From Macrostomum lignano (taxonomy: Eukaryota): a stretch of DNA of 64,000 nt. The DNA lies in assembly GCA_002269645.1 (NCBI GenBank), contig NIVC01002320.1, positions 1 through 64,000 on the forward strand. The letters are read 5' to 3'. Made by a program: the position numbers and the translations under genes. The notes beneath the pieces were generated by a model. That model saw only the letters and a list, made by a program, of their open reading frames with translations. It was not told the origin of the DNA and ran no database searches. This document shows positions 1 to 52,603 of the stretch, piece after piece; the first letter of the stretch is position 1, and each line of letters begins with the position of its first letter.

Positions 1-1184
1 TCGCCAGAGGTTTCCTTTGCAGGGCAGCCGGGTTTACCTGACGTCTGCGTCTGCAAAACTTTCTTTAGCTAAAAATATGCCAGAAAAAAGCATAAGATAA
101 AGAAATTGGATAGATGCTTGCATTGTCAAACCTAAAAATTGTATTGAAGTTACGAACTTAAGTAATAAATTCAGGATTAATATTTATCTAATTACTAATT
201 TACATACGAGTACATGCAATGCATCTAGCAGCCGTATAAAATTTTAGAATAAGATTGCTGTAGTTGACCAAAAAAGGAGGCTAAAAAAAGCTTTTAATAC
301 TCGTACTTCATAATTTCGTGGTTTGCATTTACGAGCGTAAAAGACACTCTAGCACTCTGCATAAACAAAATTATTGATAAAAAGGTCGGTACTGCTGCAA
401 CTCCAGGCAGCTTTCTATATCAACAAGAAGAGAAAGTTCGCAACCGAGCCAGCAGTTTTCACTCCAAAGCACAGCTGCTGCTGCTGCTGTTTCAGTTGCC
501 AAAGGAAATCAAAAACTGAAAGCTGCTCTTCTTCATCAGCTGTCATGGCGCAGCTCTTGGTGCTGAGTGCTCTGTGTGCAGCTCTTTGTGCTCTTGGAGG
601 CGGTGAGTTGTCTGTCTACCCTCAATGTCAGATATATTGTAAGCCTTTATCTCTCACGTGAAAGCGCCTGCTCTCTTACAGCGGCGAGCTCCATCAAGTT
701 CAACATCACGACAACAAACGTCGCGGCTTCCTGGCAGTCGTCGGAATTCGGCAACAGGTGCTTCAGAGACACGGCTGTTCTTGAGCAGTGGGATTACTTT
801 CACACGACGGACACCCCAGACTCTCATGGATACCAGTGGCTGCTCATTAAGCTGTTCCGTGCAATCCGTGTGCAATCAGTCACTGTCTATGGCAGGGCAG
901 CAGGTGAGTTGTCTTGTCCACTTCTGTCTCTTCCGCTTCACTTCTTTCTTACTTCTCTTCTCACTGCAGTGCCCAGCAGAGCACAGAACATCGAGATTCT
1001 GCTGAGTGACAGACTGCCATCGGGTCTGAATACGAGCAGCGATAGTTGCTATGGGACTCTGTCCGGTAGCTTGAGCTCGCTCACTCAGTGCGGAGTCACC
1101 AGAGTGAGCAGACTCAGACTCACAAGGTGGCCTGCAGCTACTCTGGCTGCCCGAATGTGGGTTCATATACTCTGTTGTTACTGA

Positions 1185-1284
1185 GTGCAAATAGGTGCAA
1201 ATAGGTGCAAATAGGTGCAAATCGGTGCAAATAGGTGCAAATAGGTGCAAATAGGTGCAAATAGCTGCAAATAAGGTGCAAATT
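1185..1284 (+). repeat. 10-bp tandem repeat (GTGCAAATAG)n at the start of intron 3, copy 1 (~10 units)
   Basis: Directly visible; begins at the exon 3/intron 3 boundary. Confidence 0.95.
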
Positions 1285-2100
1285 GGTGGCTAAAACTCAC
1301 GAAATTTCAGCTGACTGAGTACATCTTGCTAAGGAAGAACGTTCGAAACGAGACTTATAAATACTTAAAGTATATTAACTTTCAAGCTCTGGAAGTCGAA
1401 GAAGGTACGACTTTAGTTAAATAAGCTCAATTATGTCTTCACGGGGCATTTTTGACTCTAAACAAACTTTCTCTCTTTCAGCATCTCAGAATGCGCAGAT
1501 TTATAGGTGTGAAGTGTCTGGCGGACGCCTCAGTAACTGCAGACTCAATGCTTTGCAAACTTTGAAAAATGGCGACAGAGCTTGTATGAAAGTCTGCCCA
1601 CCGTGTCAGCTTCCGACAACTGATGCAGCATCTTGTCACATTGCTGCTCCAAGTGGCAGAATCACACAGCTGAGAGTTGTGAGCTCACGGATGAATTTAT
1701 TTCTTTTTAAATGATTTTCACAGACTATTCGACTAAATAATAGGAATAAGTGGAATGAGCAATTATGAATGGTAAAAAATCGTGTTTTTATACGATTTTA
1801 GCCAGTTCCTTAAATTTCTTTCACCATTTTCAGAATGGGCACCCAGACTTCTTTTTAATTGTAATTTTCATACCGACTGCGGAAAGTCAAGGAGGAAACT
1901 TCACGTGCAACTTTAACTGCTCGAGCGATTTGCCTCAGTCAGCAACTGAACCAATCGGTTTCTTTGGTATGCAGTTTTTGTGTGTAATTTTTACCTCAGA
2001 CAGGTGAATTCAAATTAAACTTATAGATTTGAAAAGCAACCTTGTACTATTCAAACTGTTTTAATCTAGGATATTGGTATTTTGCTAGCAGCCTAGCAGC

Positions 2101-2456
2101 AAGGACTACTCAAGTACATAAATATAGGACGCAACACTCGAAATCTACGGTAAATGTTTTGAAGGCAACTTTTCGCCGAAAAATATACAGAGATAGAAGG
2201 TTTTAATCTTATGAGAAAAACGTTTAAAATAATGACAAGACCAATTTAACATGCATAATAAATAAATGCGTTGTTAGAGCAGCATGTGAGACACAAAATA
2301 GTGTGATTAGGACTTTTTTGACACTGCTAAGAGACCTAAATACTGTTTTAGTGTTGAAAATCGTGAAACTTCCTATCTCCGTAGTGTATTTTTCCGATGA
2401 AACCTGCCTTTAAAACTATTTCTGAACAAAAAACTGCAGTACAAATTTTTTTTGTA
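2101..2456. mobile_element. Copy-1-specific insertion in the 29-bp minisatellite, containing a MITE-like segment
   Basis: Absent at the same position in copies 2-4. About 2156-2200 (gttttgaaggcaacttttcgccgaaaaatatacagagatagaagg) is an imperfect inverted repeat of ~2372-2416. Its 5' part (aaggactactcaagta..gcaacactcgaaatcta) recurs at ~30470 and ~55715. Confidence 0.55.
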
Positions 2457-2665
2457 CTGCAGTACAAATGACACCCTAGCAGCAGGTGCAGTACAAATGA
2501 CAGCCTAGCAGCATGTGCAGTACAAATGACACCCTAGCAGCAGGTGCAGTACAAATGACACCCTAGCAGCAGGTGCAGTACAAATGACACCCTAGCAGCA
2601 GGTGCAGTACAAATGACACCCTAGCAGCAGGTGCAGTACAAATGACACCCTAGCAGCAGGTTCAG
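2457..2665 (+). repeat. 29-bp minisatellite (CCCTAGCAGCAGGTGCAGTACAAATGACA)n, intron 5, copy 1 (~7 units)
   Basis: Period of 29 read directly from the sequence. Confidence 0.95.
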
Positions 2666-4384
2666 TGCCAATGGCTAAGCTAATTTTCTGTTGCAGAAGA
2701 GAAGCCCAGAAGTGTCAGCATTGAGCCCAGCAACAGGGTCCAGATTGGATCAAGGATATTTCTGGCTCCAGGCACGGAGTTTCACTTCAGCTTCATCACA
2801 GAAGCTGCGTACCCAAGTCCCATCCATGCTTGCAGGCTGGTGAGAACTGCTGAGCAGGAAACTAAAGAAGATACTTCAGGTGTTCAACTGCATCCATTCA
2901 CAGAGGTGAGAAAATTCTGTGCAATCTTACTACTTTCATTTCCCATTCTGATATTCTCTCATCAAATGCTTTTTCAGAGATCTGTCACTGACGCATCAGC
3001 CAACAAAAGCCATGCAATTACCAAGATCTCAGAGTACAGACTCAGCATTAGCGCACACATGCAAGCAGCTGGGCAAAAGATACAGTGCGTATCGACTGTC
3101 GGTGAAAGCAGTGGAAAAGTGGGGAAATCAATTTCGCTGCCTGAGCTTGTAGGTAAGCAAACTATAGAAGGCGAACACTGGCAGGTGTGATACCTGGAAT
3201 TTCTCACCTAATTCACCTGTCTAATTAGATGAGGATAAGTTGAATTGAAACGATAAAAATTACAGTACAAAGCAAGCCAGAGTTTCTGCTACCGCCAATC
3301 ACGGATTGGAAAGACGGCCACTCCGTCTCAGTTGCTGTCGACTCAACAACAGACAGCTCTGTTTCAACCAGCCACCGCTGCTTGCTGGAGACTCGAGACG
3401 GCAACAGAAGTCTCAACCTTACTCAAGTGAGTCTCGCTTTGGTTTCGTGTCGTTGTGATGTCGGTTTCCAAAACTTAAGACTGTTGCATAAGATTGAGTG
3501 CAAACGTCAGATGAAATTCCTAAGTATGGATTCCTTTTCTTCCATACATGTCCATACACAGGACTTACTTATTCTAGCACGGTAGACTTCTCAAAACGAA
3601 ATTCCAGGGTAAAAATCAACTCAGCACATTCAAAATCAATGTTGATAGACACTGGGGAAACGCAGCCTCTCTGGTCTGTTTGGTAAATCAATCTGGGCTG
3701 ATCCAGACATGGACTCGACATCGGCTACCGAAGGTGCTCTGTGAGTCTCTGATGCCATGACTTTCTTCACAAGCCCATTACTGCATTTGAAGATTAAATC
3801 ACGATTGCATTTTCGAATTCAGACAAGGCCGAAGGGCTGGCCATCCGTATTTCGTCTGGAGACCTGGTGACTGATGAAGAAGCCAGCTTCTCAGTGACTG
3901 CATCTGACTCAGGATACCCAGCGGCTCTGCACCAGTGCAGAATCGAGAGCAAGAGCCTCGGAGAAGACAAGGTATGAGGCTGATGTTATTGCTCATTCAG
4001 AGTTCCCAACCAGCATTTCAATGCTACAATTTCGGCTGACCATTCCGCAGACTGCAGAGTCAGACGGCTCAAGTCACTGGAGATTCACGCCTCAGCGAGG
4101 GCACAACGGTGAACAAATCAGATGCGATGTGGTGCAGAAACTGAGTGGCTCTTTGATATTCAGTCAGACTGTAAACAACTCTAATCTGGAGGTTAAATGT
4201 GAGGCTCATGCTTTATTATGCTGCATGCTGTCATCCCAATCGATGCAGTAGGGCTGCTTGCACTTCAGACAGGGCAATCGTCACGTGGCCCAGCAAAATC
4301 GCTCCGAAAAAGGAAGGCGAGGCTCTGTCATTCGTTGTGCTCGCAGACGGCAACCCAGAGCCCAGCAGTCAGTGCTGGCTGCAG

Positions 4385-4975
4385 CTGGTATCTGGCGCAC
4401 AGGTGAGTCTTTGATTTGGGATGATGCTGGTATCTGGCTCACAGGTGAGTCTTTGATTTGGGATGATGCTGGTATCTGGCTCACAGGTGAGTCTTTGATT
4501 TGGGATGATGCTGGTTTCTGGCTCACAGGTGAGTCTTTGATTTGGGATGATGCTGGTATCTGGCGCACAGGTGAGTCTTTGATTTGGGATGATGCTGGTT
4601 TCTGGCTCACAGGTGAGTCTTTGATTTGGGATGATGCTGGTTTCTGGCTCACAGGTGAGTGTTTGATTCAGGATTGATGCAGGTTTCTGGCGCACAGGTG
4701 AGTCTTTGATTTGGGACTGATGCTGGTTTCTGGCTCACAGGTGAGTCTTTGATTTGGGATGATGCTGGTATCTGGCGCACAGGTGAGTCTTTGATTTGGG
4801 ATGATGCTGCTTTCTGGCGCACAGGTGAGTCTTTGATTTGGGATGATGCTGGTTTCTGGCTCACAGGTGAGTCTTTGATTTGGGATGATGCTGGTTTCTG
4901 CCTCACAGGTGAGTCTTTGATTTGGGAGTGATGCTGGTTTCTGGCTCACAGGTGAGTCTTTGATTTGGGATGATG
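4385..4975 (+). repeat. 42/43-bp minisatellite containing CAG|GTGAGT, intron 12, copy 1 (~14 units)
   Basis: Unit CTGGTTTCTGGCTCACAGGTGAGTCTTTGATTTGGGATGATG; the first unit overlaps the 3' end of exon 12. Confidence 0.95.
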
Positions 4976-7900
4976 TTGCAGTCTCGGTGTTTCATAATAA
5001 TCGCTATTTTCGTTCCAGGTAGACCTGCATAAGCTGAAGCATTCCATGTTTGAGAGCACCTTCAACGTCACTGTTGATAGGTCAATGAACCGAGCCAATT
5101 TGAGCTGTGTTTTGACTCAACCTGGACTTCCATCTTCAACAGAGCAGAGGTTCACCCAATTGATCACAGTTTTTTGTAAGTTTACAGTATCCATTTTCAT
5201 AGGGTTCATAAAGAGGTATACAATTTGTAAATGCGTGCGTATTTTTTGAGCCAATGGAAACATTTCCTGTCGCTTCGGAGGCTCTGAGTTGAAGCACTTC
5301 TTAAATCGAAGACTGAAAAATAATATCGACCCAATCATCCTACAGATCAGCCTCAGCCTCCACTCACCATCGACTTGGCTCAGACTGTCTACGAAGGCAC
5401 CGACGTCACCTTCACGGTGCGGTCGGGCGCTGGAAACCCCAATGTCACCCACAGATGCCACGTGTACAACGGAGAAATTGTGAGCGCAATATTTGCTCAT
5501 CCATTCAACTGACGTGCAGCTTTGATTTAGCATAGAGTTGATCATTTCAGGAAGTTCAAAACAGCATGAAAATCGAATCGGAGTACTTGACAATGGTGAA
5601 CTATGCACCCAACAGTCATGACACATTTGTGAGCTGCACGGCCGAGCAGATGCACCGCTCTGATGTTGTGTTCACCAGCAGCATCAGAAGGAACATCACC
5701 GTAAATTGTGAGAAGTCAAATGCCATTTTATTAGCATGCAGCCTGCCATTTACTTGAAAACCGGAGTATCCACTTTAACTTCAGACTTTGCGCGCAACTC
5801 CATGGACATCAGTCCGACAGACGGAGTTCTTGCTGGAGATCGAGTCGAAGGGACACTCAGATCTCATGGTGGCCGGCCTGCCGTCACGCGTCCTGAGTGT
5901 TCGCTTGGAGGCTCTGAGCTGACTATGGAAAACGTATGCTTTTTCATCACCTGAGTGCTTTTGAATTGAATGTAAACCTTCTTCAGGCAACCTAAATGAT
6001 CAATTTGGGAATTTTCCTACAGTTAACAAGGCGTCCCACCGAAGTGAAGTTCACGTTCCGTGCATCGAAAGAGCACCACGGCAAGGTGCTCGCCTGCAAA
6101 TTCGTACAGGATGAGCGACTGATTGAGTGGAGGAGAGACAAACTCAGCGTCTTCTGTAAGTACAGTTTGAGTTGTTTATTGGTGTGAAAGTATGGGGGTA
6201 TCTTCTACATTGAAAAGTAACTCGTTAAGCCACACTGATGTAAATGTGCACTGCTTTTTCGCACCTGTAGACAAAGCGGATTTCGACTCTGAGGTAAGAA
6301 TCATAAATAGAAAAGTCAGGTGGAACACGACAGTCCAGTTCAGCATCTCCTACTCTGATGTGGGAAACCCGTCCGCCAAGCACTTCTGCCGCATCGGCTC
6401 TCGGCCACTCACCGATGCTGAGGTGCGAAAATACTGACCAACATTTTTGTGCCCGCTTTATGTAAGTAACAAGGTAATTAGAGGTTGTAATGGAAAACAT
6501 CTGGTCAAAATACATTTCAGTCGGTTTCGGCATCACAAAGATTGTTGCGTTGGAAGTTCAAGGCTCAAGTCGGAGACAACGGTCAGAAGATCGTCTGCCA
6601 GGTGGTGCAAAATGATCGACATGGCGGCCTCGTCTTTAACCAAACAGTTGCCAGCCAGACTCTGGATGTGCTCTGTAAAGATTTTGTTTATCAGTTGTAT
6701 TTATTGCTTCAATAGAGCTATTTATATTTATTCCAATATATTGAACCACTTTGACTGTCACAACATTGTTTTCTTAATCTCTATCTTTTCAGACCCAGTC
6801 AGCTACTCAGGATTTCTATCCCAGCCACCGTCGGTGACGGAGGGCGATCCCTTGGTTATTTCTTTCTTTTCAACAGGAGGAAACCCCGAGCCTCGTCACC
6901 GATGCTGGTTGCAGACACCTGCAGGTCGGATGGACGCAGTCGCTCTAACAGAGGCGAGGACAGGTGTGGACCTCGTGACGAGCTTCAGTGTGACTTCCGT
7001 AAAGCAGATGAATGGAGGATCTGTGGTTTGCCGCGTCTCTCAGATGGGCCTCGAGGACCTGGACAAGGATTTCTCCCAGAACATTACTGTTTTCTGTGAG
7101 TTCTCTGTCGCGACTGCTCCAACTTTTATATCAATATAAAATCTAATAGAGGCTTGCAGTGCGTTCGTTTTTCCGTTTGCAGTCCGATCGGAGGTGGATC
7201 TGACCGGCTCAAGGATTTCAGGATCCATTGTGCTCATCAGCATCAATGTGACGGACGGAAACCCGACACCGCTGGTGAACTGCTCGCTGCTCTCGAGCTC
7301 TGGAACTCGACATGTGGGTTCTCAGTGTGCACAGTTGCTCCGCTTCTATTTGCATTGAGTAGCTTTAATGCAGCCGAACCCGTCATTTTAGGAGGTGTCC
7401 AGGAATTACTCGACAATGCTGAAAGTCGGACTGCATGAGATAGAAGTCGATCTGCTTTCAAGAGACCAGCCTCAGTCAGCCAACGTCACGTGTTCTGTGA
7501 AGCAATACTATGCGGGTTTCAAAAGCAGCAGCCTTGTCTTCTTGGCACTCAAAGCTGACGAGAGTTTCCAAGCTAGCGACCAAGAAAGTGAGCAGTTCTG
7601 TTTAGTCCAGCTTAGCTGCATTAATAAACTATTGTCTTTTAAGTTAATCGTATTGTAATGTCTTATCATATTGCTACCATTGTATTATCGCTACAAAAAC
7701 TGATCAATGCAGACCATGGGAGCCTCAGCTGGAATCAAATGTTCCAAATTCTCTGTCTGTGCGCAGTGGTTGGTGTCGCCATCGTTCTGTCCATCTCGCT
7801 GCCTGCCACAGTCTACGTCTGGAGGCGAACTGCATCGCCTCGGTTGGGAATTCAGCGGCAGCACGGAGCAGCCACAGACAGGAGACCAGCTGACGTACCT

Positions 7901-8377
7901 CTGGTCCCTGTGACTGCTGCTGAGCGAGATCTCAATGTAATATTGCTTTTCAGAATTGCTTGCTCATTTTGCTGTTTAATCTGTGTGTGAGGCTGACAAT
8001 CTGTGGGACACTTCAGACCGTCTACTACTATGAGGAGAACCCGGCGCTTCCGGATCGGCCTCCAAGCGTTGAGGAGACGGACTCAAATGTAAGTCTATTG
8101 TCTGCATCTTTGCCAGATGCTCTCAGTGCATGCTCAGTGCAGGATTCAGTTCCGCTCATTGCAGATGGTGCACTGTTCTGAGGAGGAGCAGACGGCTCAG
8201 GGAGCTGTCGAATTCTACGTGCAGTGAAAGTGATTTGCAAGTTGGAGTTTCACTGCTCAGACTCTGTTTTGGAGAAAACGAAACTGCATATATGAGAGTA
8301 TTGGCTGACTGAGCTTGCCTATATAGGCTCTGTTGCGCCGTTTGAAAGTACAACTGAGTGGCACAAAGATTTGGTAG

Positions 8378-8383
8378 AATAAA
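8378..8383 (+). terminator. Candidate polyadenylation signal of copy 1
   Basis: AATAAA 150 nt after the stop; conserved in copy 3 (39312-39317). Confidence 0.45.
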
Positions 8384-32237: not shown

Positions 32238-32316
32238 GTGCAAATAGGTGCAAATAGGTGCAAATAGGTGCAAATAGGTGCAAATAGGTGCAAATAGGTG
32301 CAAATAGGTGCAAATA
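32238..32316 (+). repeat. 10-bp repeat (GTGCAAATAG)n, intron 3, copy 3 (~8 units)
   Basis: Directly visible. Confidence 0.95.
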
Positions 32317-33106: not shown

Positions 33107-33255
33107 GCTAGCAGCCTAGCAGCAGGTGCAGTACAAATGGCAGCCTAGCAGCAGGTGCAGTACAAATGACAGCCTAGCAGCAGGTGCAGTACAACTGGCA
33201 CCCTAGCAGTAGGTGCAGTACAAACGGCAGCCTAGCAGCAGGTGCAGTACAAACG
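33107..33255 (+). repeat. 29-bp minisatellite, intron 5, copy 3 (~5 units)
   Basis: Directly visible. Confidence 0.9.
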
Positions 33256-35112: not shown

Positions 35113-35938
35113 CTGGTTTCTGGCTCACAGGTGAGTCTTTGATTTGGGATGATGCTGGTTTCTGGCTCACAGGTGAGTCTTTGATTTGGGATGATGCTGG
35201 TTTCTGGCTCACAGGTGAGTCTTTGATTTGGGATGATGCTGGTTTCTGGCTCACAGGTGAGTCTTTGATTTGGGATGATGCTGGTTTCTGGCTCACAGGT
35301 GAGTCTTCAATTTGGGATGATGCTGGTTTCTGGCTCACAGGTGAGTCCTTGATTTGGGAGTGATGCTGGTTTCTGGCTCACAGGTGAGTCTTTGATTTGG
35401 GAGTGATGCTGGTTTCTGGCTCACAGGTGAGTCTTTGATTTGGGAGTGATGCTGGTTTCTGGCTCACAGGTGAGTCTTTGATTTGGGATTGATGCTGCTG
35501 GTTTCTGGCTTACAGGTGAGTCTTTGATTTGAAAGTGATGCTGGTTTCTGGCTCACAGGTGAGTCTTTGATTTGGGAGTGATGCTGGTTTCTGGCTCACA
35601 GGTGAGTCTTTGATTTGGGAGTGATGCTGCTGGTTTCTGGCGCACAGGTGAGTCTTTGATTTGGGAGTGATGCTGCTGGTTTCTGGCTCACAGGTGAGTC
35701 TTTGATTTGGGAGTGATGCTGGTTTCTGGCTCACAGGTAACCTTTGATTTTGGAGTGATGCTGGTTTCTGGCTCACAGGTGAGTCTTCAATTTGGGAGTG
35801 ATGCTGGTTTCTGGCTCACAGGTGAGTCTTTGATTTGGGATTGATGCTGCTGGTTTCTTGCTCACAGGTGAGTCTTTGATTTGGGAGTGATGCTGCTGGT
35901 TTCTGGCTCACAGGTGAGTCTTTGATTTGGGAGTGATG
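35113..35938 (+). repeat. 42/43-bp splice-donor minisatellite, intron 12, copy 3 (~19 units)
   Basis: Directly visible. Confidence 0.95.
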
Positions 35939-38900: not shown

Positions 38901-41900
38901 CTCATTTTGCTGTTTAATCTGTGTGTGAGGCTGACAATCTGCGGCACTTTTCAGACCGTCTACTACTATGAGGAGAACCCGGCGCTTCCGGATCGGCCTC
39001 CAAGCGTTGAGGAGACGGACTCAAATGTAAGTCTATTGTCTGCATCGTTGCCAGATGCTCTCAGTGCATGCTCACTGCAGGATTCAGTTCCGCTCATTGC
39101 AGATGGTGCACTGTTCTGAGGAGGAGCAGACGGCTCAGGGAGCCATCGAATTCTACGTGCAGTGAAAGTGATTTGCAAGTTCGAGTTTCGCTACTCAGAC
39201 TCTTGGAGAAACCAAAACTGCATATATGAGAGCATTGGCTGACTGAGCTTGCCTATATAGGCTCTGTTGCGTCGTTTGAAAGTACAACTGAGTGGCACAA
39301 AGATTTGGTAGAATAAACAAAGTCTCGGTTTCGATATATTATTTTTAAACGATGCTATCAAAAACGATGCACAATAATGGTTATTAATCTGGAATTGGAG
39401 TGGCGTTGGGCACGGGGCACAAAATGGGGTGGTGGGCTCACAAGGATGTACAATCAATAATTCAATAGTTAATTAGTTCACGCACGCATTGGCGGTTAGC
39501 GTAAAATTTTAAAACAAGCCACAGGTACAGCGACAGACCCAGCGTTGCCTCAGACTCAGTGCATGCTTTCAAGGTTCCTGTGTATAAGACTGGCAATGCT
39601 TTCCTTGCAGCTCGTATTTTGATTTTGCTTTTGGTCTTGCCGAATAACATTCTTTTAACAATAACTCGATTAACTTGAGAATCACAGATGCCTCTGCTAC
39701 AAATTAGCTATTAGAGCAGTCAAAATGCTAACAAGTACACGAGACTGATTTGCATAATTTTTGTTTTTCAAGAAACGGCCGTCAAGTTGCGATCCTCCAG
39801 TCTTTCTCGTCTGGCAGTCGGGATTGAAGCTTTTCTGGCCTGACTCAATGAGACAATGCCTGACAGAGCAACTTTGGAAGGCTTGCAGAAGGATTTAAAT
39901 CACTTTTATAAGCCTTGGGTTTCTTTTTGTAGCCATTGGTGTTTGATGAGTGTCATTGAAATAACCTTTTCTACAGATCTAGTGCATATATTTGACATTT
40001 TAATCCGGTTTGAAGGCTCTCTAACTCACAGTATCAGTTTACTACTTAAAATGCTGTCTTCTTTGCATGATATTTTTGTAACAGGGTCTATGAAAGTTCA
40101 GCATGTGATCTACTGACCCATTACTTTATTAGTCACTCAGGAGCTGCACTTCAGTGTGTATCTCTTGCAAAGTGGAACTTGTGTTTGGCATCGGAATAAA
40201 CAGATGCACCACCTCATCTCCTCTGCTTTAGCCGCTCGAAAACAATGTTTTATCAAGATTACACACTTTGGCACCTACACATTGGCATTGAAGCGTGCAG
40301 TAGCGTGCAGTAGAAGTGTGCCGTCAGCCTAGTGCACTTGTCTGTGCTTAGAGTGACTGATTTTCTCTTCTTGGTTCGACAACTTGAATAGTTTATAATT
40401 CCATTTTGCAGGCTTCTCCGTTATGCCGTAAAGACGGTCTCTGATGAGAATGTCACCGAAGGTGTACTCGACCCGGAGGGTTGTGGTTCGGGCTGGGACT
40501 TCTGGCCGGCGATCTTGTATCCCGTATTTCAGGAAGAGTACCGCGCTCTGTGCTGCTTTGAGCTGCCATTGCGCTAGGTGAACCTACTCCAAAGACTACT
40601 CAAGTAGGACGGGAAACCTCGTTTCTTGGAAAATTTTAGGAGCCAGGTTTTCCCGAAAAAATACACTACGGAGATGGGAAGATCCTATCTTTCGATAGGA
40701 GGCAGACCTAATGTTCATTTTTTATGTTCTGCCTTTCTTATAGCTCTATTGATATTCATAAAGCTTTTCGTTCAGAAAATTAGGATTCTATGTTAATCTT
40801 TTATTCTGCGTACATTCCCTGTACCTAAAAATCATAAAAATGCATGGCACAGCTCCACTCATTGGTTCTATGAATCTGTTTTATTATCTCTGTTACACGC
40901 ATTGTTACACGGTCAGCTAAGTGTTACAAAATAGATTAAAAAACCAATGAACCGAACCGCGCCATTCAAATGGTTTTCAGGCACAGGACATGTGCAATTG
41001 TACGTAGAATAAGAAATTATAAACATAGAATCCTAATTCTCTCAATGAAAAGCTTATCCTAGGCTTTGGAGATGTGTTCGGCGCCGGAGTGAAAGGCTCT
41101 CACCTGTTTGCGGCACAGCCCGGTGGTGCAATTGCTCTCCCAGTTGCCCATATAGCGACCCTGCCTGAAGGGTAGTTTAGGCCAGCGGATGACGGTCTCT
41201 GAGGAGGCCGACCTGGTCCACTAAAAGCGGGTTGGCGGAGCCATACCAATTGCAAGAAATAAAGAGCTTCGCAGTTAGGATCACCCAGAATCTCTCGCCC
41301 CTGATGGCGCCCAATCTTTGCCTCTTATGGCTATGGCTCACCCCTGCCTATCCAAAATTACTGCTATCTTTGTGATGCAGCCCAAGCTTTGTGCTACGCA
41401 AAGGGGGATTCCAGTTTTTAGGTGGCCCTGGTCCAGTACCCATGGGGAACTCAACCCACTATTCAAAAGGCAGAGCCAAATCCGTGCTTAGGCGACCCCG
41501 TTTAACAACAACAGCGGGGCCTGTGAAAGTTCAGCGGTTGGATCTGCTGACCCGATACTGTATTAGTGCACTTCAGCGTTTTTCTCTTGCAAAGTGGAAC
41601 TTGTGTTTGGCATCGGAATAAACTTTTTACAGATGCGAGATTCTGCACCACCTCGTATCCTCTGCTTTAGCCGCTCGAAAACAATGTTTTATCAAGATTA
41701 GACTCTGCGAAACCAACGCATTGGCATTGAAGCAGTGTGCAGTCAGCATAGTGCACTTCTTTGTCCTTGGAGCAACTGATTTTTCTTCTTGGTTAGACGA
41801 CTTGAATAGTTTATAATTCCATTCTGCAGGCTTCTCCGTTATGACTTCACTGATAACTTTGATAACCCTTACCAACTAAATTTCATCTAAACCTGCATCT

Positions 41901-43034: not shown

Positions 43035-46000
43035 ATGGCGCAGCTCTTGGCGCTGTGCGCTCTGTGTGCAGCTCTTTGTGCTCTTGGAGGCGGTGAGTTG
43101 TCTGTCTGCCTTCAATGTCAGATATATTGTAAGCCTTCATCACTCATGTGAAGCCCCTGCTCTCCTACAGCGGCGAGCTCCATCAAGTTCAACATCACGA
43201 CAACAAACATCGCGGCTTCCTGGCAGTCGTCAGAATACTTCAACAGGTGCTTCGGAGACACGGCTGTTCTTGAGCAGTGGGATTACTTTCACACGACGGG
43301 CACCCCAGACTCTCATGGAAACCAGTGGCTGCTCATTAAGCTGTTCCGTGCAATCCGTGTGCAATCAGTCACTGTCTATGGCAGGGCAGCAGGTGAGTTG
43401 TCTTGTTCACACTTCTGTCTCTTCCGCTTCACTTCTTTCTTACTTCTCTTCTCACTGCAGAGCCCAGCAGAGCACAGAACATCGAGATTCTGCTGAGTGA
43501 CAGACTGCCACCGGGTCTGAATGCGAGCAATGGCAGTTGCTATGGGACTCTATCCGATAGCTTGAGCTCGCTCACTCAGTGCGGAGTCACCCAGAGTGAG
43601 CAGACTCAGACTCACAAGGTGGCCTGCAGCTACTTTGGCTGCCCGAATGTAGGTTCATATACTCTGTTGTTTCTGAGTGCAAATAGGTGTAAATAGGTGC
43701 AAATAGGTGCAAATAGGTGCAAATAGGTGCAAATAGGTGCAAATAGGTGCGATTAGGAGGTGCAAAGAGGTGCGATAAGAAGGTGCAAATAGGTGAAAAT
43801 AGGTGCAAATAGGTGGAAATAGAAGGTGCAAATAGGTGCAAATAGGTGCAAATAGGTGCAAATAGAAGGTGCAAATAGGTGCAAATAGGTGCAAATAGGT
43901 GCAAATAGGTGCAAATAGGTGCGATTAGGAGGTGCAAATAGGTGCAAATAGGTGAAAATAAATGCAAATAGGTGCAAAAAGGAGGTGCAAATAGGTACAA
44001 ATTGGTGCAAACTGATACAAATAGGTGTAAATAGGTGCAAATAGGTGCAGGTGCAAATAGGTGTGATTAAAGGTGCAAATAGGTGCAAATAGGTGAAAAT
44101 AAATGCAAATAGGTGCAAAAAGGAGGTGCAAATAGGTGCAAATGGGTGCAAATAGGTGCAAATAGGTGCAAATAGGTGCAAATAGGTGCAAATAGGTGCA
44201 AATAGGTGCAAATAGGTGCAAATAGGCGCAAATAGGTGCAAATAGGTGCAAATAGGTGCGATTAGGAGGTGCAAATAGGTGCGATTAGAAGGTGCAAATA
44301 GGTGCGATTAGAAGGTGCAAATAGGTGCAAATAGGTGCAAATAGCTGCAAATAAATGGGTAAATCACACGAAATTTCAGGTGACTGAGTACATCTTGCTA
44401 AGGAAGAACGTTCGAAACGAATCTGATAAGTACATGAACTTTCAAGCTCTGGAAGTCGAAGAGGGTACGACTGTAGTTGAATAAAGCTTAATTAAGTCTT
44501 CATGGGACATTGTTGACTCTAAACAGACTTTCTCTCTTTCAGCATCTCAGAATGCGCAGATTTATAGGTGTGAAGTGTCTGGCAGACACCTCAGTAACTG
44601 CAGACTCAATGCTTTGCAAACTTTGAAAAATGGCGACAGAGCTTATATGAAAGTCTGCCCATCATGTCAGCTTCCGACAACTGATGCAGCATCTTGTCAC
44701 ATTGCTGCTCCAAGTGGCAATATCACACAGCTGAGAGTTGTGAGCTCACGGATGAATTTATTTCTTTTAAAATGATTTTCACGGACTATTTGACTAAATA
44801 ATAGGAATAAGTGAAATGAGCAATGATGAATGTTAACACTTTATTTTTTATACGATTGTAGCCAGTTCCTTAAAGTTCTTTCACCATTTTCAGAATGGGC
44901 ACCAAGACTCCAATTTAATTGTAATCAGCTTTAATTGCTTGAGCGAGTTGCCTCAGTCAGCAACTGAACCAATCGGTTTCTTTGGTATGCAGCTTTTGTG
45001 TGTACTTTTTACCTTAGACAGGTGAATTCAAATGAAACTTATAGATTTGTAGAGCAACCTGGTACTGTTCAAACTGTTGTAATCTAGGATATTGGTATTT
45101 TGCTAGCAGCCTAGCATTAGATCCAGTACAAATGGCAGCCTAGCAGCAGGTGCAGTACAAATGGCAGCCTAGCAGCAGGTGCAGTACAAATGGCAGCCTA
45201 GCAGCAGGTGCAGTACAAACGGCTGAGCTCATTTTCTGTTGCAGAGGAGAAGCCCAGAAGTGTCAGCATTGAGCCCAGCAACTGGGTCCAGATTGGATCA
45301 AGAATTTTTCTGGCTTCAGGCATGGAGTTCCACTTCAGCTTCATCACAGAAGCTGCGTACCCAAGTCCCATCCATGCTTGCAGGCTCGTGAAAACTGCTG
45401 AGCAGGAAACTACAGAAGATACTTCAGGTGTTCTACTGCGTCCTTTCACAGAGGTGAGAAAATCCTGTGCAATCTTAATACCTTCATTCCCCATTCTGAT
45501 ATTCTTTCATCAAATGCTTTTTCAGAGATCTCTCACTGACGCATCATCGAACAAAAGCCATGTAATTACCAAGATCTCTGAGTATAGACTCAACATTGGC
45601 GCACACAATGCAGTTGAGAAAAAAATACAGTGCGTGTCAGCTGTCGGTGAAAGCAGTGAAAAATCGGTGAAATCAATTTCGCTGCCTGAGCTGGTAGGTA
45701 AGCAACAATATATTTGCGCCTTTTGGGAGAGTACTGGCAGGTATGATACCTGGAATTTCTCATATTAGATGAAGTTGAGCTGTATTGAAACGATAAAAAC
45801 TGCAGTTCCAAGCAAGCCGGAGTTTCTGCTACCGCCAATCACGGATTGGAAAGACGGCCACTCCGTCTCAGTTGCTGTCGACTCAACAACAGACAGCCCT
45901 GTTCCAACCAGCCACCGCTGCTTGCTGGAGACTCGAGACGGCAACAGAAGTCTCAACGCTACTCAAGTGAGTCTTGCTTTCATTTCATGCCGTCGTAATG

Positions 46001-49000
46001 TCGGTTTAAATTATAATTTACAATTGCAAAAAATTGAATGATTTTCATCTAACATCAAATATTTCCTTCATGCGCCTGAAAAAAGCATTTAGCGTTCTGA
46101 GCATGAGCAGGCTTTGTTTCTCATTGAAATTTTAAAACTATTCTTAAGCTCAGAATGGACACCGTGCTCATAAAAAATATGAAATTTCTAAATTGCTACA
46201 AATTTCGGTTCGTTCTCTTACATACATGTCCATACACAGGACTTACGTATTCTCGCATGGTAGAGACTTCTCAAATCGAAATTCCAGGGTACAAATCAAC
46301 TCAGCACATTCAAAATCAATATTGATAGAACCTGGGGCAGCCCAGCCTCTCTGGTCTGTTTGGTAAATCAATCTGGGCTGATCCAGACATGGACTCGACG
46401 TCGGCTACCGAAGGTGCTCTGTGAGTCTCTGATGCCATGACTTTCTTCACAAGCCTATTTCTGCATTTGAAGATTAAGTCACGATTGCATTTTCGAATTC
46501 AGACAAGGCCGAAGGGCTGGCCATCCGTATTTCGTCTGGAGACCTGGTGACTGATGAAGAAGCCAGCTTCTCAGTGACTGCATCTGACTCAGGATACCCA
46601 GCGGCTCTGCACCAGTGCAGAATCGATAGCAAGAGCCTCGGAGAAGACAAGGTATGAGGCTGATGCAATTGCTCATTCAGAGTTCCCAACCAGCATTTCA
46701 ATGCTACAATTTCGGCTGACCATTCCGCAGACTGCAGAGTCAGACGGCTCAAGTCACTGGAGATTCACGCCTCAGCGAGGGCACAACGGTGAACAAATCA
46801 GATGCGATGTGGTGCAGAAACTGAGTGGCTCTTTGATATTCAGTCAGACTGTAAACAACTCTAATCTGGAGGTTAAATGTGAGGCTCATGCTTTATTATG
46901 CTGCATGCTGTGATCCCAATCGATGCAGTAGGGCTGCTTGCACTTCAGACAGGGCAATCGTCACGTGGCCCAGCAAAATCGCTCCGAAAAAGAAAGGCGA
47001 GGCTCTGTCATTCGTTGTGCTCGCAGACGGCAACCCAGAGCCCAGCAGTCAGTGCTGGCTGCAGCTGGTTTCTGGCTCACAGGTGAGTCTTTGATTTGGG
47101 ATGATGCTGGTTTCTGGCTCACAGGTGAGTCTTTGATTTGGGAGTGATGCTGGTTTCTGGCTCACAGGTGAGTCTTTGATTTGGGAGTGATGCTGGTTTC
47201 TGGCTCACAGGTGAGTCTTTGATTTGGGAGTGATGCTGGTTTCTGGCTCACAGGTGAGTCTTTGATTTGGGAGTGATGCTGGTATCTGGCTCACAGGTGA
47301 GTGTTTGATTTGGGATGATGCTGGTTTTTGCTGACAGGTGAGTCTTTGATTTGGGAGTGATGCTGGTTTCTGGCTCACAGGTGAGTCTTTGATTTGGGAG
47401 TAATGCTGGTCTCTGGCTCACAGGTGAGTCTTTGATTTGGGAGTGATGCTGGTTTCTGGCGCACAGGTGAGTCTTTGATTTGGGATGATGCTGGTTTCTG
47501 GCTCACAGGTGAGTCTTTGATTTGGGAGTGATGCTGGTTTCTGGCTCACAGGTGAGTCTTTGATTTGGGAGTGATGCTGGTTTCTGGCTCACAGGTGAGT
47601 CTTTGATTTGGGAGTGATGCTGGTTTCTGGCTCACAGGTGAGTCTTTGATTTGGGAGTAATGCTGGTCTCTGGCTCACAGGTGAGTCTTTGATTTGGGAG
47701 TGATGCTGGTATCTGGCTCACAGGTGAGTCTTTGATTTGGGATGATGCTGGTTTCTGGCTCACAGGTGAGTCTTTGATTTGGGAGTGATGCTGGTCTCTG
47801 GCTCGCAGGTGAGTCTTTGATTTGGGAGTGATGCTGGTCTCTGGCTCGCAGGTGAGTCTTTGATTTGGGAGTGATGAGTGATGCTGGTTTTTGGCTCACA
47901 GGTGAGTCTTTGATTTGGGAGTGATGCTGGTCTCTGGCTCGCAGGTGAGTCTTTGATTTGGGAGTGATGCTGGTTTCTGGCTCACAGGTGAGTCTTTGAT
48001 TTGGGATGATGCTGGTTTCTGGCGCACAGGTGAGTCTTTGATTTGGGAGTGATGCTGGTTTCTGGCTCACAGGTGAGTCTTTGATTTGGGATGATGCTGG
48101 TTTTTGGCTCACAGGTGAGTCTTTGATTTGGGAGTGATGCTGGTTTCTGGCGCACAGGTGAGTCTTTGATTTGGGATGATGCTGGTTTCTGGCTCACAGG
48201 TGAGTCTTTGATTTGGGAGTGATGCTGGTTTCTGGCTCACAGGTGAGTCTTTGATTTGGGATGATGCTGGTTTTTGGCTCACAAGTGAGTCTTTGATTTG
48301 GGAGTGATGCTGGTTTCTGGCTCACAGGTGAGTCTTTGATTTGGGATGATGCTGGTTTTTGGCTCACAAGTGAGTCTTTGATTTGGGAGTGATGAGTGAT
48401 GCTGGTTTCTGGCTCACAGGTGAGTCTTTGATTTGGGAGTGATGCTGGTTTCTGGCTCACAGGTGAGTCTTTGATTTAGGATGATACTGGTTTCTGGCTC
48501 ACAGGTGAGTCTTTTATTTGGGAGTGATGAGTGATGCTGGTTTCTGGCTCACAGGTGAGTCTTTGATTTGGGAGTGATGCTGGTCTCTGGCTCACAGGTG
48601 AGTCTTCAATTTGGGATGATGCTGGTTTCTGGATCACAGGTGAGTCTTTGATTTGGGAGTGATGCTGGTTTCTGGCTCACAGGTGAGTCTTTGATTTGGG
48701 AGTGATGCTGGTTTCTGGCTCACAGGTGAGTCTTTGATTTGGGAGTGATGCTGGTTTCTGGCTCACAGGTGAGTCTTCAATTTGGGATGATGCTGGTTTC
48801 TGGATCACAGGTGAGTCTTTGATTTGGGAGTGATGCTGGTTTCTGGCTCACAGGTGAGTCTTTGATTTGGGAGTGATGCTGGTTTCTGGCTCACAGGTGA
48901 GTCTTTGATTTGGGAGTGATGCTGGTTTCTGGCTCACAGGTGAGTCTTTGATTTGGGAGTGATGCTGGTTTCTGGCTCACAGGTGAGTCTTTGATTTGGG

Positions 49001-52000
49001 AGTGATGCTGGTTTCTGGCTCACAGGTGAGTCTTTGATTTGGGAGTGATGCTGGTTTCTGGCTCACAGGTGAGTCTTTGATTTGGGAGTGATGCTGGTTT
49101 CTGGCTCACATGTGAGTCTTTGATTTGGGAGTGATGCTGGTTTCTGGCTCACAGGTGAGTCTTTGATTTGGGAGTGATGTTGGTTTCTGGCTCACATGTG
49201 AGTCTTCGATTTGGGAGTGATGCTGGTTTCTGGCTCACAGGTGAGTCTTTGATTTGGGATGATGCTGGTTTCTGGCTCACAGGTGAGTCTTTGATTTGGG
49301 AGTGATGCTGGTTTCTGGCTCACAGGTGAGTCTTTGATTTGGGATGATGCTGGTTTCTGGCTCACAGGTGAGTCTTTGATTTGGGAGTGATGCTGCAGTC
49401 TCGGTGTTTCATAATAATCACTATTCTCGTTCCAGGTAGACCTGCATAAGCTGAAGCATTCCATGTTTGACAGCACCTTCAACGTCACTGTTGATAGGTC
49501 AATGAACCGAGCCAACTTGAGCTGTGTTTTGACTCAACCTGGACTTCCATCTTCAACGGAGCAGAGGTTCACCCAATTGATCACAGTTTTTTGTAAGTTT
49601 ACAGTATCCATTTTCATAGGGTTCATAAAGAGGTATACAATTTGTAAATGCGTGCGTATTTTTTGAGCCAATGGAGACATTTCCTGTCGCTTCGGAGGCT
49701 CTGACTTGAAGCACTTTTTAAATCATAGACTGAAAAATAATATCGACCCAACAATCTCACAGATCAGCCTCAGCCTCCACTCACCATCGACTTGGCTCAG
49801 ACTGTCTACGAAGGCACCGACGTCACCTTCACGGTGCGGTCGGGCGCTGGAAACCCCAATGTCACCCACAGATGCCACGTGTACAACGGAGAAATTGTGA
49901 GCGCAATATTTGCTCATCAAATCACCTGACTTGCAGCTGTGATTTAACACAGAGTTGATCATTCCAGGAAGTTCAATACAGCATGAAATTCGAGTCGGGG
50001 TACTTGACAACGGTGAACTATGCACCCAACAGTCATGACACATTTGTGAGCTGCACGGCCGAGCAGAAGCACCGCTCTGAAGTTGTGTTCACCAGCAGCA
50101 TCAGAAGGAACATCACCGTCAATTGTGAGAAATCCAATGCCATTTTATTAGTATGCAGCCTGGCATTTACTTGAAAACCGGAGTATCCACTTTGACTTCA
50201 GACCTTGCTCGCAACTCCATGGACATCAGTCCGACAGACGGAGTTCTTGCTGGAGATCGAGTCGAAGTGACGCTCAGATCTTCTGGTGGCCGGCCTGCCG
50301 TCACGCGGCATGAGTGTTCGCTTGGAGACTCTGAGCTGGCTATGGAAAACGTATGCTTTTTATCACCTGAGTGCTTTTGAATTGACTGTAAACCTTCTTC
50401 AGGCATCCTAAATGATCAATTTGAGAATCTGTCTACAGGTAACAAGGCGTCTCACCGAAGTGAAGTTCACGTTTCGTGCATCGAAAGAGCACGACGGCAA
50501 GGTGCTCGCCTGCAAATTCGTCCAGGATGAGCGAATGTTTGAGTGGAAGAAAACCAATCTCAGCGTTTTCTGTAGGAGAAAATGAACCAATATTTTTCAC
50601 GTCTTTTCGCTTTTTGTTTGCGAATGCATGTACACTTCACATTCACTTTTCGTACCTTTAGACAAAGCGGCTGTCGACTCTGAGGTGCAAACCTTAAAGA
50701 GAAAAGTCAGGTGGAATACGACAGTCCAGTTCAGCATCTCCTACTCTGATGTGGGAAACCCGTCCGCCAAGCACTTCTGCCGCATCGGCTCTCGGCCACT
50801 CACCGATGCTGAGGTGCGAAAATGCTGACCCACATTTTTGTCTGCTTTATGTAAGGGACTGGGTAGTTGATATTGTAATGGGAAACATCTGGTCAAAATA
50901 CATTTCAGTCGGTTTCGGCATCACAAAGATTGTCGCGTTGGAAGTTCAAGGCTCAAGTCGGAGACAACGGTCAGAAGATCGTCTGCCAGGTGGTGCAAAA
51001 TGATCGACATGGCGGCCGAGTCTTTAACCAAACAGTTGCCAGCCAGACTCTGGATGTGCTCTGTAAAGATTTTGTTTATCAGTTGTATTTATTGCTTCAA
51101 TAGAGCTATTTATATTTATTCCAGTATATTGAACCACTTTGACTGTCACAACATTGTTTTCTTAATCTCTATCTTTTCAGACCCAGTCAGCTACTCAGGA
51201 TTTCTATCCCAGCCACCGTCGGTGACGGAGGGCGATCCCTTGGTTATTTCTTTCTTTTCAACTGGAGGAAACCCCGAGCCTCGTCACCGATGCTGGCTGC
51301 GGACACCTGAAGGTCGAATGGACGCAGTCGCTCCAACAGAGGCGAGGACAGATGTGGATCTCGTGACGAACTTCAGTTGGACTTCCGTAAAGCAGATGAA
51401 TGGAGGATCCGTGGTTTGCCGCGTCTCTCAGATGGGCCTCGAGGACCTGGACAAGGCGTTCTCCCAGAACATTACTGTTTTCTGTGAGTTCTCTGTCGCG
51501 ACTGCTGCAATTTTTATATCAATATAAAATCTAATAAAAAACGTTCGTTTTTCCGTTCCAGTCCGATCGGAGGTGGATCTGACCGGCTCAAGGATTTCAG
51601 GATCCACAGTGCTCGTCAGCGTCAATGTGACAGACGGAAACCCGACACCGCTGGTGAACTGCTCGCTGCTCTCAAGCTCTGGAACTCGACATGTGGGTTC
51701 TCAGTGTGCACAGTTGCTCCGCTTCTACGAGCTATTTCCATTGAGTAGCTTTAATGCCGCCGAACCCGTCATTTTAGGAGCTGTCCAGGAAGGACTCGGC
51801 AATGCTAAGAGTCGGACTGCATGAGATGGAAGTCGATCTGTTTTCAAGAGAGCAGCCTCAGTCAGCCAACGTCACGTGTTCTGTGAAGCAAGACTATGCG
51901 GGTTTCAAAAGCAGCAGCCTTGTCTTCTTGGCACTCAAAGCTGACGAGAGTTTTCAAGCTAGCGACCAAGAAAGTGAGCAGTTCTGTGTAGTCCAGCTTA

Positions 52001-52603
52001 GCTGCATTACTAAACTATTGTCTTTTAAGTTAATCGTATTGTAATGTCTTATCATATTGCTACTATTGTATTATCGCTACAAAAACTGATCAATGCAGAC
52101 CATGGGAGCCTCAGCTGGAATCAAATGTTCCAAATTCTCTGTCTGTGCGCAGTGGTTGCCGTCGCTATCTTTCTTTCTCTGCCTGCCACAGTCTACGTCT
52201 GGAGGCGAACTGCATCGCCTCCGTTAGGAATTCAGTGGCAGCACAGAGCAACCACAGACAGGAGATCAGCTGACGTACCTCTGGTCCCTGTGACTGCTGC
52301 TGAGCGAGATCCCAATGTATAATTATTGCATTTCAGTATTGCTTGCTCAATTTGCTGTTTAATCTGTGAATGAAGCTGACAATCTGCGGCACTTTTTAGA
52401 CCGTCTACTACTACGAGGAGAACCCGACACTTCCGGATCGGCCTCCGAGCGTTGAGGAGACGGACGCGAATGTGAGTCTACTGTCTGAATCTTTGCCAGA
52501 TGCTCTCAGTGCATGCAGGATTCAGTTCCGTTAATTGCAGATGGCGAACTGTTCTGAGGAGGAGCAGACGGCTCAGGGAGCTGTCGAATTCTACGTGCAG
52601 TGA
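43035..52603 (+). CDS. F-type-lectin/10xIg transmembrane receptor, copy 4 (open, 1302 aa by exon sum; 14-aa deletion in Ig1)
   Basis: Exons 43035-43092, 43171-43392, 43461-43676, 44543-44739, 44894-44984, 45245-45453, 45526-45697, 45806-45966, 46288-46420, 46503-46651, 46731-46878, 46949-47082, 49436-49592, 49763-49896, 49968-50124, 50202-50350, 50439-50571, 50662-50813, 50909-51062, 51181-51483, 51562-51692, 51778-51973, 52099-52316, 52400-52471, 52541-52603. Sum is 3909 nt, phases are consistent, and there is no stop. Confidence 0.8.
43677..44355 (+). repeat. Expanded 10-bp repeat with variants, intron 3, copy 4 (>60 units)
   Basis: (GTGCAAATAG)n with interspersed GATTAGGAG and ATAGAAG variants. 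Confidence 0.95.
45103..45222 (+). repeat. 29-bp minisatellite, intron 5, copy 4 (~4 units)
   Basis: Directly visible. Confidence 0.9.
47065..49392 (+). repeat. Expanded 42/43-bp splice-donor minisatellite, intron 12, copy 4 (~54 units)
   Basis: About 2.3 kb of the same unit; mostly the 43-bp GGGAGTGATG variant. Confidence 0.95.

Follow-up and report, generated by a model that had tools for sequence, protein, structure and literature searches.

The first 64,000 nucleotides of contig NIVC01002320.1 of the flatworm Macrostomum lignano (assembly GCA_002269645.1, forward strand; hereafter the window) hold four long, closely related genes in a row, which raises the question of what kind of protein they encode and whether they are still maintained. 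An earlier interpretation made from the letters alone, here called the sequence-only reading, had proposed a tandem family of same-strand membrane receptors at 545-52603, each with an F-type-lectin-like domain on ten immunoglobulin (Ig) domains. Self-BLAST of the window returned four units, all on the plus strand and 88-96% identical in DNA, which start at about 430, 12030, 31180 and 42620, and the proposed limits held as well, as the ATG of the first gene lies at 545-547 and the stop codon of the last one ends at 52603. We refer to these tandem paralogues as copies A, B, C and D. In our reading, to which we give a probability of roughly 55%, they form a young tandem array of a Macrostomum-specific gene family, which encodes lectin-headed type I membrane glycoproteins acting as receptors or adhesion molecules.

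The gene model of copy A was built by hand from open frames and splice-site scans and was carried to B, C and D by a four-way MAFFT alignment, with 26 exons modelled in each copy (Table 1). AG/GT was present at every mapped exon boundary of the four copies, with exon 10 of copy C, which encodes the second half of Ig2, as the sole exception; it follows a replaced intron segment and uses an acceptor at 34289, 27 nt further upstream. A first model with 25 exons and a short exon 3 (donor 1103/12698), open in B and D, was dropped for the 26-exon model, which is likewise open in B and D. Database models from the same species have an exon 3 that is longer by 53 nt, followed by an additional 85-nt exon, and the 26-exon model completes the last lectin strands (..YILLRKNV..NFQALEVEE), which are kept in all paralogue subfamilies. 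Both ends of the exon that encodes the transmembrane (TM) segment are uncertain, because the database models place its acceptor 50 nt downstream and its donor 27 nt upstream of those in our model. No RNA genes were found in tRNA and Rfam scans of the window.

Copies B and D spliced to uninterrupted open reading frames (ORFs) of 1339 and 1321 codons, and the chance of even one such open frame at this composition is about 2e-33. Gap runs in the exons were multiples of 3 in 7 of 9 cases (3, 3, 6, 6, 6, 9 and 42), compared with 19 of 89 in the introns (Fisher p = 0.001). Mismatches between copies amounted to 5-6% in exons and 8-10% in introns, with far more indels in the latter. Therefore, considering the long open frames of B and D together with the in-frame exon indels and the lower exon divergence, the exon chain is under reading-frame constraint.

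Topology was read from Kyte-Doolittle hydropathy. The copy B protein has exactly two peaks above 2, at residues 4-22 and 1233-1251; the first segment is signal-peptide-like and ends in GGA, and the second peaks at 2.66, with RR after it. The stretch in between has 25-27 N-glycosylation sequons, and the tail of about 80 residues carries TVYYYEEN and ends in EFYVQ-COOH, with its tyrosines identical in all four copies. The predicted product has the signal peptide, the single C-proximal TM segment and the basic residues of a type I membrane protein. The order of parts that had been proposed, from a signal peptide through a lectin-like head, an Ig stalk and a TM segment to a tyrosine-bearing tail, is borne out.

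The identity of the N-terminal head, proposed to be an F-type or galactose-binding-like domain, was approached through sequence profiles and predicted structure. In Pfam, the head gave sub-threshold matches to galactose-binding-like families only, namely F5_F8_type_C_2 (E = 0.003), F5_F8_type_C (E = 0.0015-0.02) and Sad1_UNC. An exhaustive phmmer search with the database model P0001 against 1.84 billion representative proteins gave 16 matches; one was an unrelated repeat protein (P0012), and the remainder were from M. lignano by name or near-identity, except for P0015 (E = 5e-8) and the bacterial P0018 (E = 2e-4), which match Pfam F5_F8_type_C_2 / F5_F8_type_C. In public data, relatives of the N-terminal region are hence restricted to M. 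lignano, besides these two distant F5/8-C lectin-like proteins. A profile that included P0015 gave stronger F-lectin matches; it was set aside as biased and replaced by a flatworm-only profile, which at E <= 10 retrieved only the classical F-type lectins MsaFBP32 of striped bass (3cqo, 3.7e-6) and the eel agglutinin AAA (1k12, 0.17) from 177,635 PDB sequences.

AlphaFold2 (AF2) models were made from the database protein P0001 and paralogue fragments, and the head of the P0001 model reached a predicted local distance difference test score (pLDDT) of 75-86 except in two weaker loop blocks. With this head, Foldseek returned galactose-binding-like jellyrolls, including CBM32, with MsaFBP32 and AAA at ranks 3 and 4; AAA had the top sequence identity in the list (18%). 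F-type lectins are described as having a fucose motif HX24RXDX4(R/K) and a calcium motif h2DGx (PMC5712786). The flatworm head reads FHTT...(30 residues)...R-A-(A/S)-(V/E)-P-S-R, at which both arginines of the fucose triad align, with the same spacing, to those of the C-terminal domain of MsaFBP32. These two arginines and a WQSS and QWLL core are conserved across the paralogue subfamilies. Copy C has Leu in place of the putative lectin His, and some members of the family have Leu or Ala there; the distant relative P0015 has ANDGL where the calcium motif would be. Membership of the head in the F-type-lectin/discoidin fold group is supported, and so, by these profile and motif comparisons, is its homology to F-type lectins, with the F-type lectins standing alone among the PDB matches of the flatworm-only profile. 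Sugar binding by the head is plausible but unproven. As homology is supported but the motifs are degenerate, we name the head a divergent F-type-lectin-like domain.

Behind the head lies a Cys-rich domain with five cysteines that are invariant across the paralogue subfamilies. Its naming differs between databases, being CUB in one source and Ig-like in another. The CUB identity, which is the source name of P0001, was rejected, since no Pfam CUB match appeared at E <= 5 and none was among the Foldseek top 50. In its AF2 model (pLDDT 74), Foldseek led to filamin repeats and to the Ig domains of an antibody, Dpr and CD33, with TM-scores of 0.42-0.53, and the model therefore points to an atypical Ig-like sandwich. 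It is presumably the first of the ten Ig domains counted in the sequence-only reading. Three database models (P0002, P0004 and P0005) join the last lectin exon straight to Ig1 or Ig2 and bypass the Cys-rich domain; the domain-boundary introns are all phase 1, so this skipping keeps the frame, and it may reflect alternative splicing or a prediction artefact.

The remainder of the stalk consists of nine C2-type Ig domains, eight of which are split over two exons by a phase-0 intron and one of which is encoded by a single exon, with phase-1 introns bounding all of them. The C2 assignment was upheld by the Pfam family C2-set_2 (PF08205), which matched the whole protein with 33.4 bits against a cut-off of 21, and by a nine-domain profile whose PDB matches were B7-H3 (1.4e-7), SYG-2 (9.5e-5) and nectin-4 (6.5e-4), and also CADM4, SIRP, PVR and ICAM-1. 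The count of ten Ig-like domains stood, and what changed was their composition, one atypical Cys-rich domain and nine C2-type domains. With SYG-2 as reference, the B-strand Cys is replaced by a hydrophobic residue in all nine C2-type domains, all nine have a Cys where the conserved C-strand Trp would stand (motif GNPxPxxxC), and none has lost the F-strand Cys; the same pattern recurs in the distant paralogue P0007. The missing B-strand Cys together with the Cys at the Trp position implies a relocated (C-F) disulfide or free thiols.

In public protein sets the subfamily is present only as uncharacterised fragments of 142 to 760 aa, all from one automatic annotation. Some of these models skip exons or run from one copy to the next. 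The products have 1320-1340 aa and the longest database model of them has 760 aa, so routine domain surveys miss the family. Identity between the fragments and the window copies is 88-97%, and therefore further copies or alleles exist. Other paralogue subfamilies, 33-44% identical, have the head and the Cys-rich domain in common. Among them, PAA49974.1 (P0007) is full-length with 804 aa and has the same head and Cys-rich domain, fewer Ig domains, a TM segment and a tail with VVYAQV, which resembles an immunoreceptor tyrosine-based inhibitory motif (ITIM), and TEYTEI, which resembles an immunoreceptor tyrosine-based switch motif (ITSM). Its locus (L001, 4223-15969; NIVC01003746.1, GCA_002269645.1) is single-copy, beside a poly(A)-binding-protein-like gene, which shows that family members do not generally sit in tandem arrays.

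A full-text literature search yielded no paper linking Macrostomum with F-type lectins and no lectin-Ig receptor described for M. lignano. The frequent partners of eukaryotic F-type lectin domains named in a review are C-type lectin, pentraxin, CCP, transmembrane and FA58C, and Ig is not named (PMC5712786). The suggestion that no family of this architecture had been described therefore agrees with what we found in the literature. The domain architecture is new, and its theme, a lineage-specific receptor family combining a lectin with the Ig superfamily (IgSF), is already known.

The four copies differ in their state. In copy A, a 1-bp deletion (CCC to CC, at about 1099) puts exon 3 out of frame, with a stop following in exon 4; reading can continue in frame only where the short exon-3 donor (1103) pairs unconventionally with an acceptor at 1489. 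This frameshift could be an assembly error in a homopolymer, and copy A is, as it reads, probably disabled. In copy C a TAG at 38360-38362, a codon that reads ATG or TTG in A, B and D, interrupts the last Ig domain upstream of the membrane anchor, and in copy D a 42-nt in-frame deletion in exon 6 removes 14 codons of the Cys-rich Ig-like domain. The truncated member mentioned in the sequence-only reading is thus copy C, with copy A additionally damaged by its 1-bp deletion. The decayed relatives said to lie nearby were not recovered: a full-protein tblastn with E up to 50 gave nothing outside the four genes (best outside match, E = 1.3), and neither the spacers nor the 11 kb right of copy D yielded a family fragment by tblastn.

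As the segment 6256-12798 (the 3' half of A, the spacer and the start of B) matches 37194-43695 (from C to D) with 95.6% identity, and B and D also match in their 3' flanks, a two-gene unit was duplicated, from [A,B] to [C,D]. By copy A coordinates, the closest pair is A-D at 3.5-4.5 kb, B-C at 5.7-6.3 kb, and A-C and B-D at the 3' end; such a mosaic is the expected product of gene conversion or unequal exchange. The array grew by duplication of the pair and is being homogenised patchily by gene conversion, with A and C decaying and B gaining an insertion. The birth-and-death mode that had been proposed is only partly supported, by the damage in two of the four copies and by the two-gene duplication unit with its mosaic of gene conversion.

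The copy proteins are 89-91% identical, with a pairwise synonymous divergence (dS) of 0.07-0.09, a nonsynonymous divergence (dN) of about 0.05 and a dN/dS of 0.55-0.66. The ratio stays below 1 throughout the extracellular domains and the TM/tail block; the ratio of nonsynonymous to synonymous proportions (pN/pS) is 0.68 in the head and highest, at 0.89, in Ig3, the highest pN is that of Ig2, and only the 19-codon signal peptide exceeds 1 (1.14, with 12 substitutions). A domain-wise pN/pS comparison found no hypervariable domain, although four sequences give it little power. These values indicate relaxed purifying selection, which is common in young duplicates. The much amino-acid divergence seen in the sequence-only reading was accordingly overstated, and its picture of a diversified locus is not shown by these ratios.

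Each gene also carries inserted or repeated DNA. Intron 6 of copy B holds an intact Ty3/gypsy long terminal repeat (LTR) retrotransposon, and the same intron measures about 290-730 nt in A, C and D. The direct repeats of the element (13970-14094 and 18425-18549) are 98% identical; its pol ORF (14854-18363) is open over 1169 aa with reverse transcriptase, RNase H, integrase, SH3-like and C-terminal integrase domains, and a gag-like ORF (14160-14798) is open over 212 aa with no Pfam match. The element is young. A 42/43-nt minisatellite starts in the final 19 nt of exon 13, which encodes the first half of the fourth C2-type Ig domain, and repeats the exon end together with its 5' splice site, in 14 units in A, about 18 in B (estimated from the array length), 19 in C and 54 in D. 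Every unit has a consensus 5' splice site (CTCACAG/GTGAGT), and read-through past the first exon 13 donor runs into a TGA three codons on, which makes every unit a decoy donor that would bring a premature stop.

Other repeats also lie in the window. A satellite in intron 3, (GTGCAAATAG)n, was found at 43677-44353 (copy D, 65 units), 1185-1270 and 32240-32310, and a 29-nt repeat in the intron before Ig1 at 2458-2673, 13594-13955, 33111-33257 and 45106-45223; both vary in length by copy, and the LTR element of copy B borders the 29-nt array. Every gene is followed downstream by a dispersed repeat of about 600 nt (8825-9395, 29493-30126, 39745-40300 and 53836-54469), with 74-77% identity between the A/C and B/D types and 98% between the B and D copies; this repeat is probably a non-autonomous element older than the duplication of the two-gene unit. 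Near the right end of the window, a 2.1-kb inverted repeat (58187-60298 / 61889-64000) is 99.7% identical between its arms, contains internal 20-nt and 80-nt tandem repeats and adjoins a strongly CT-rich low-complexity stretch at 56.1-57.1 kb (GC skew -0.57).

Table 1. Positions of the four gene copies, of the protein parts that they are predicted to encode and of inserted or repeated DNA in the window
Feature	Position	Strand	Remarks
Gene copy A	545..8227	+	26 exons, probably disabled
Copy A exons 1-13	545-602, 682-903, 970-1156, 1311-1404, 1482-1678, 1834-1966, 2697-2905, 2978-3152, 3266-3426, 3608-3740, 3823-3971, 4051-4198, 4269-4402	+	
Copy A exons 14-26	5019-5175, 5346-5479, 5551-5707, 5785-5933, 6023-6155, 6271-6422, 6521-6674, 6793-7095, 7183-7313, 7392-7587, 7713-7936, 8017-8088, 8165-8227	+	
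Gene copy B	12141..24633	+	Intact ORF, 1339 aa, no internal stop codon
Copy B exons 1-13	12141-12198, 12276-12497, 12564-12751, 12825-12909, 12989-13185, 13337-13469, 18861-19069, 19140-19314, 19412-19572, 19880-20012, 20095-20243, 20323-20470, 20541-20674	+	
Copy B exons 14-26	21476-21632, 21803-21936, 22008-22164, 22242-22390, 22480-22612, 22703-22854, 22955-23102, 23221-23526, 23613-23743, 23822-24023, 24119-24342, 24423-24494, 24571-24633	+	
Gene copy C	31598..39165	+	Premature stop ahead of membrane anchor
Copy C exons 1-13	31598-31655, 31734-31955, 32022-32209, 32343-32427, 32506-32702, 32857-32989, 33279-33487, 33560-33734, 33828-33988, 34290-34449, 34532-34680, 34779-34926, 34997-35130	+	
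Copy C exons 14-26	35982-36138, 36309-36442, 36514-36670, 36748-36896, 36986-37118, 37209-37360, 37456-37603, 37740-38042, 38127-38257, 38336-38531, 38657-38874, 38955-39026, 39103-39165	+	
Gene copy D	43035..52603	+	Intact ORF, 1321 aa
Copy D exons 1-13	43035-43092, 43171-43392, 43461-43648, 44380-44464, 44543-44739, 44894-44984, 45245-45453, 45526-45697, 45806-45966, 46288-46420, 46503-46651, 46731-46878, 46949-47082	+	
Copy D exons 14-26	49436-49592, 49763-49896, 49968-50124, 50202-50350, 50439-50571, 50662-50813, 50909-51062, 51181-51483, 51562-51692, 51778-51973, 52099-52316, 52400-52471, 52541-52603	+	
F-type-lectin-like head	B 12276..12909; A 682-1404, C 31734-32427, D 43171-44464	+	Exons 2-4, residues ~20-185
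Cys-rich Ig-like domain	B 12989..13469	+	Exons 5-6, residues ~186-294
Nine C2-type Ig domains	B 18861..24023	+	Exons 7-23, residues 295-1220
TM segment and cytoplasmic tail	B 24119..24633	+	Exons 24-26; YYYEEN, EFYVQ-COOH
Ty3/gypsy LTR retrotransposon	13970..18790	+	~4.8 kb, ends approximate; intron 6 of copy B
42/43-nt minisatellite	A 4384..4975, B 20656-21435, C 35112-35938, D 47064-49395	+	Repeats exon 13 end and 5' splice site

From these parts we infer that the proteins are expressed, bind a ligand, signal and serve a biological role. The divergent F-type-lectin-like domain would stand membrane-distal, about ten Ig-like domains out from the membrane, and the whole would act as a lectin-headed surface receptor or adhesion molecule in the manner of selectins or Siglec-1. 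The ligand of the head would be a carbohydrate or some other molecule on the surface of a second cell, a microbe or a gamete; the Ig stalk would lift the head past the glycocalyx, and the tail may couple to cytoplasmic partners via tyrosine phosphorylation. Best supported is thus a lineage-specific type I membrane receptor or adhesion molecule, whose head shares descent with F-type lectins and whose stalk shares descent with IgSF proteins of the nectin/nephrin type. Candidate roles of the proteins are immunity, tissue adhesion and reproduction.

Several observations weigh against a functional array of lectin-headed receptors. Two of the four copies (A and C) carry disabling lesions, and a dN/dS of 0.55-0.66, with no positive selection, is nearer to relaxed constraint than to strong function. 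The Pfam score of the head is under the gathering score (18.5 vs 27.8 bits), its Foldseek E-values are modest (about 1e-4), and CBM32, APC10/DOC, SUN and the muskelin discoidin domain score like the F-type lectins. The canonical HX24RXDX4(R/K) is not intact, as the His is separated from the first Arg by 30 residues, not 24, and is 3 residues off the lectin His in the alignment, and no acidic residue follows that Arg at +1 or +2; the calcium motif h2DGx is absent too, the corresponding segment CF(R/G)DTAV... having no DG. The tails of the window copies contain no canonical ITIM, ITSM or immunoreceptor tyrosine-based activation motif (ITAM). Lastly, protein searches for the subfamily gave fragmentary UniRef models alone, all built on another assembly, and neither an NCBI (PAA) nor a transcript-derived model.

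The main rival explanation is that the array is dispensable and decaying, and that the constraint is a remnant of a functional ancestor or of paralogues elsewhere. Such decay would agree with the frameshift of A, the premature TAG of C, the 4.8-kb retrotransposon in an intron of B and the decoy-donor minisatellites, which reach 54 units in D, as well as with the dN/dS of 0.55-0.66 and with protein searches that gave no transcript-derived database model. We nevertheless consider it unlikely, since B and D keep their open frames of 1339 and 1321 codons and all splice sites, 7 of the 9 exon indels are in frame compared with 21% in introns, exon divergence is about half of intron divergence, and dN/dS is clearly below 1 in every pair. 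Another rival is that uncollapsed haplotypes or homeologues of one gene were stitched in tandem by the assembly. The M. lignano genome is duplicated and repeat-rich, and the frameshift of copy A lies in a short homopolymer, both of which would suit an artefact. However, the copies stand in tandem on one sequence with non-identical spacers and are 5-10% apart in DNA, they differ in lesions and in structure (the LTR element, the 42-nt deletion, the replaced intron segment and minisatellite arrays that range from 14 to 54 units), and the model P0005, from another assembly, crosses from the tail of one copy to the head of its neighbour, as a true tandem predicts. Because of these copy-specific structural differences and of the database model spanning two neighbouring copies, we regard an artefact as extremely improbable, and the sequence-only reading was right to treat the copies as separate genes.

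Two further alternatives accept a maintained membrane protein and assign it another role. A protein-protein adhesion molecule of the nephrin/SYG-2/nectin kind, in which the jellyroll has lost sugar binding and serves as a protein- or lipid-binding discoidin-like module, would fit Ig domains that are nearest to SYG-2, nectin-4, CADM4 and B7-H3, the degenerate fucose and calcium motifs, and a His that some members of the family have exchanged for Leu or Ala. Where the triad of an F-type lectin domain is replaced, sugar recognition may have been lost (PMC5712786). It accounts less well for the conservation of the two arginines and the WQSS and QWLL core across subfamilies, and for PDB profile matches that are lectins alone, not discoidin or FA58C proteins, and we think it rather doubtful. 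A reproductive receptor for gamete or mating recognition would be the analogue of oyster sperm bindins, in which F-type lectin repeats, diversified by recombination, act in sperm-egg binding (PMC5712786), and the present family is likewise lineage-specific, duplicated and recombining. Yet the head shows no sign of positive selection (pN/pS 0.68), and bindins are secreted acrosomal proteins with neither Ig domains nor a TM segment, which makes this analogy a poor bet.

A lectin-headed receptor or adhesion molecule, as we prefer to see it, can be set beside several known systems. With the F-type lectins AAA (1k12) and MsaFBP32 (3cqo) it shares the homologous head, a predicted galactose-binding-like jellyroll and the two aligned triad arginines, whereas it differs in the spacing and position of the His, in the acidic residue, in h2DGx and in an insertion of about 25 residues ahead of the last strands; moreover, those lectins are secreted and consist of lectin domains only, whereas the flatworm protein is predicted to be membrane-anchored with an Ig stalk. 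Drosophila furrowed / CG9095 combines an F-type lectin domain with a C-type lectin domain, CCP repeats and a TM segment (PMC5712786). Compared by architecture, it too is a membrane-anchored F-type lectin domain on a stalk of repeated modules, although that stalk is made of CCP (sushi) repeats and a C-type lectin domain in place of the ten Ig-like domains found here. Selectins and Siglec-1 have an N-terminal glycan-binding domain, a long repeat stalk, a single TM segment and a short tail, and hence the same design logic; their lectin folds (C-type lectin and V-set Ig, respectively) are unrelated, and the likeness is one of architecture only.

Snail FREPs, CREPs and GREPs and amphioxus VCBPs are lectin-IgSF chimeras that act in invertebrate immunity. 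They are secreted, begin with 1-2 IgSF domains and end in a lectin or chitin-binding domain, and they are somatically or allelically diversified. They share with the flatworm family the pairing of IgSF with a carbohydrate-binding domain, the lineage-specific distribution and the multiple copies, whereas the flatworm protein has the reversed order, a predicted membrane anchor and ten Ig-like domains, and its diversification is not shown. A secreted protein of the FREP/CREP/GREP type was ruled out by the reversed domain order and the TM segment. With nephrin/SYG-2, nectins, CADM and B7-H3 the stalk has in common the C2-set_2 match, the GNPxP motif and an L-x-V-x-Y linker; those proteins have no lectin head, whereas the flatworm domains lack the B-strand Cys and have a Cys at the C-strand Trp position.

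To our knowledge, few pattern-recognition or self/non-self receptors have been recognised in free-living flatworms, and M. lignano is a genetically tractable model in which transgenesis and RNAi are available. An F-type-lectin-like head on a ten-domain Ig stalk would add an architecture to the invertebrate lectin-IgSF chimeras, and the systematic replacement of the Ig disulfide, with a Cys at the Trp position, is of structural interest. The family would also supply a candidate for glycan-based recognition of cells, microbes or gametes in the phylum. A farther-reaching possibility, which we hold to be rather improbable, is a flatworm-specific system of non-self or mate/gamete recognition that is varied between individuals by duplication, gene conversion, exon skipping and copy loss. 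If true, platyhelminths would have their own equivalent of snail FREPs, oyster bindins or Hydractinia Alr, and its building block would be an Ig domain whose disulfide has been relocated.

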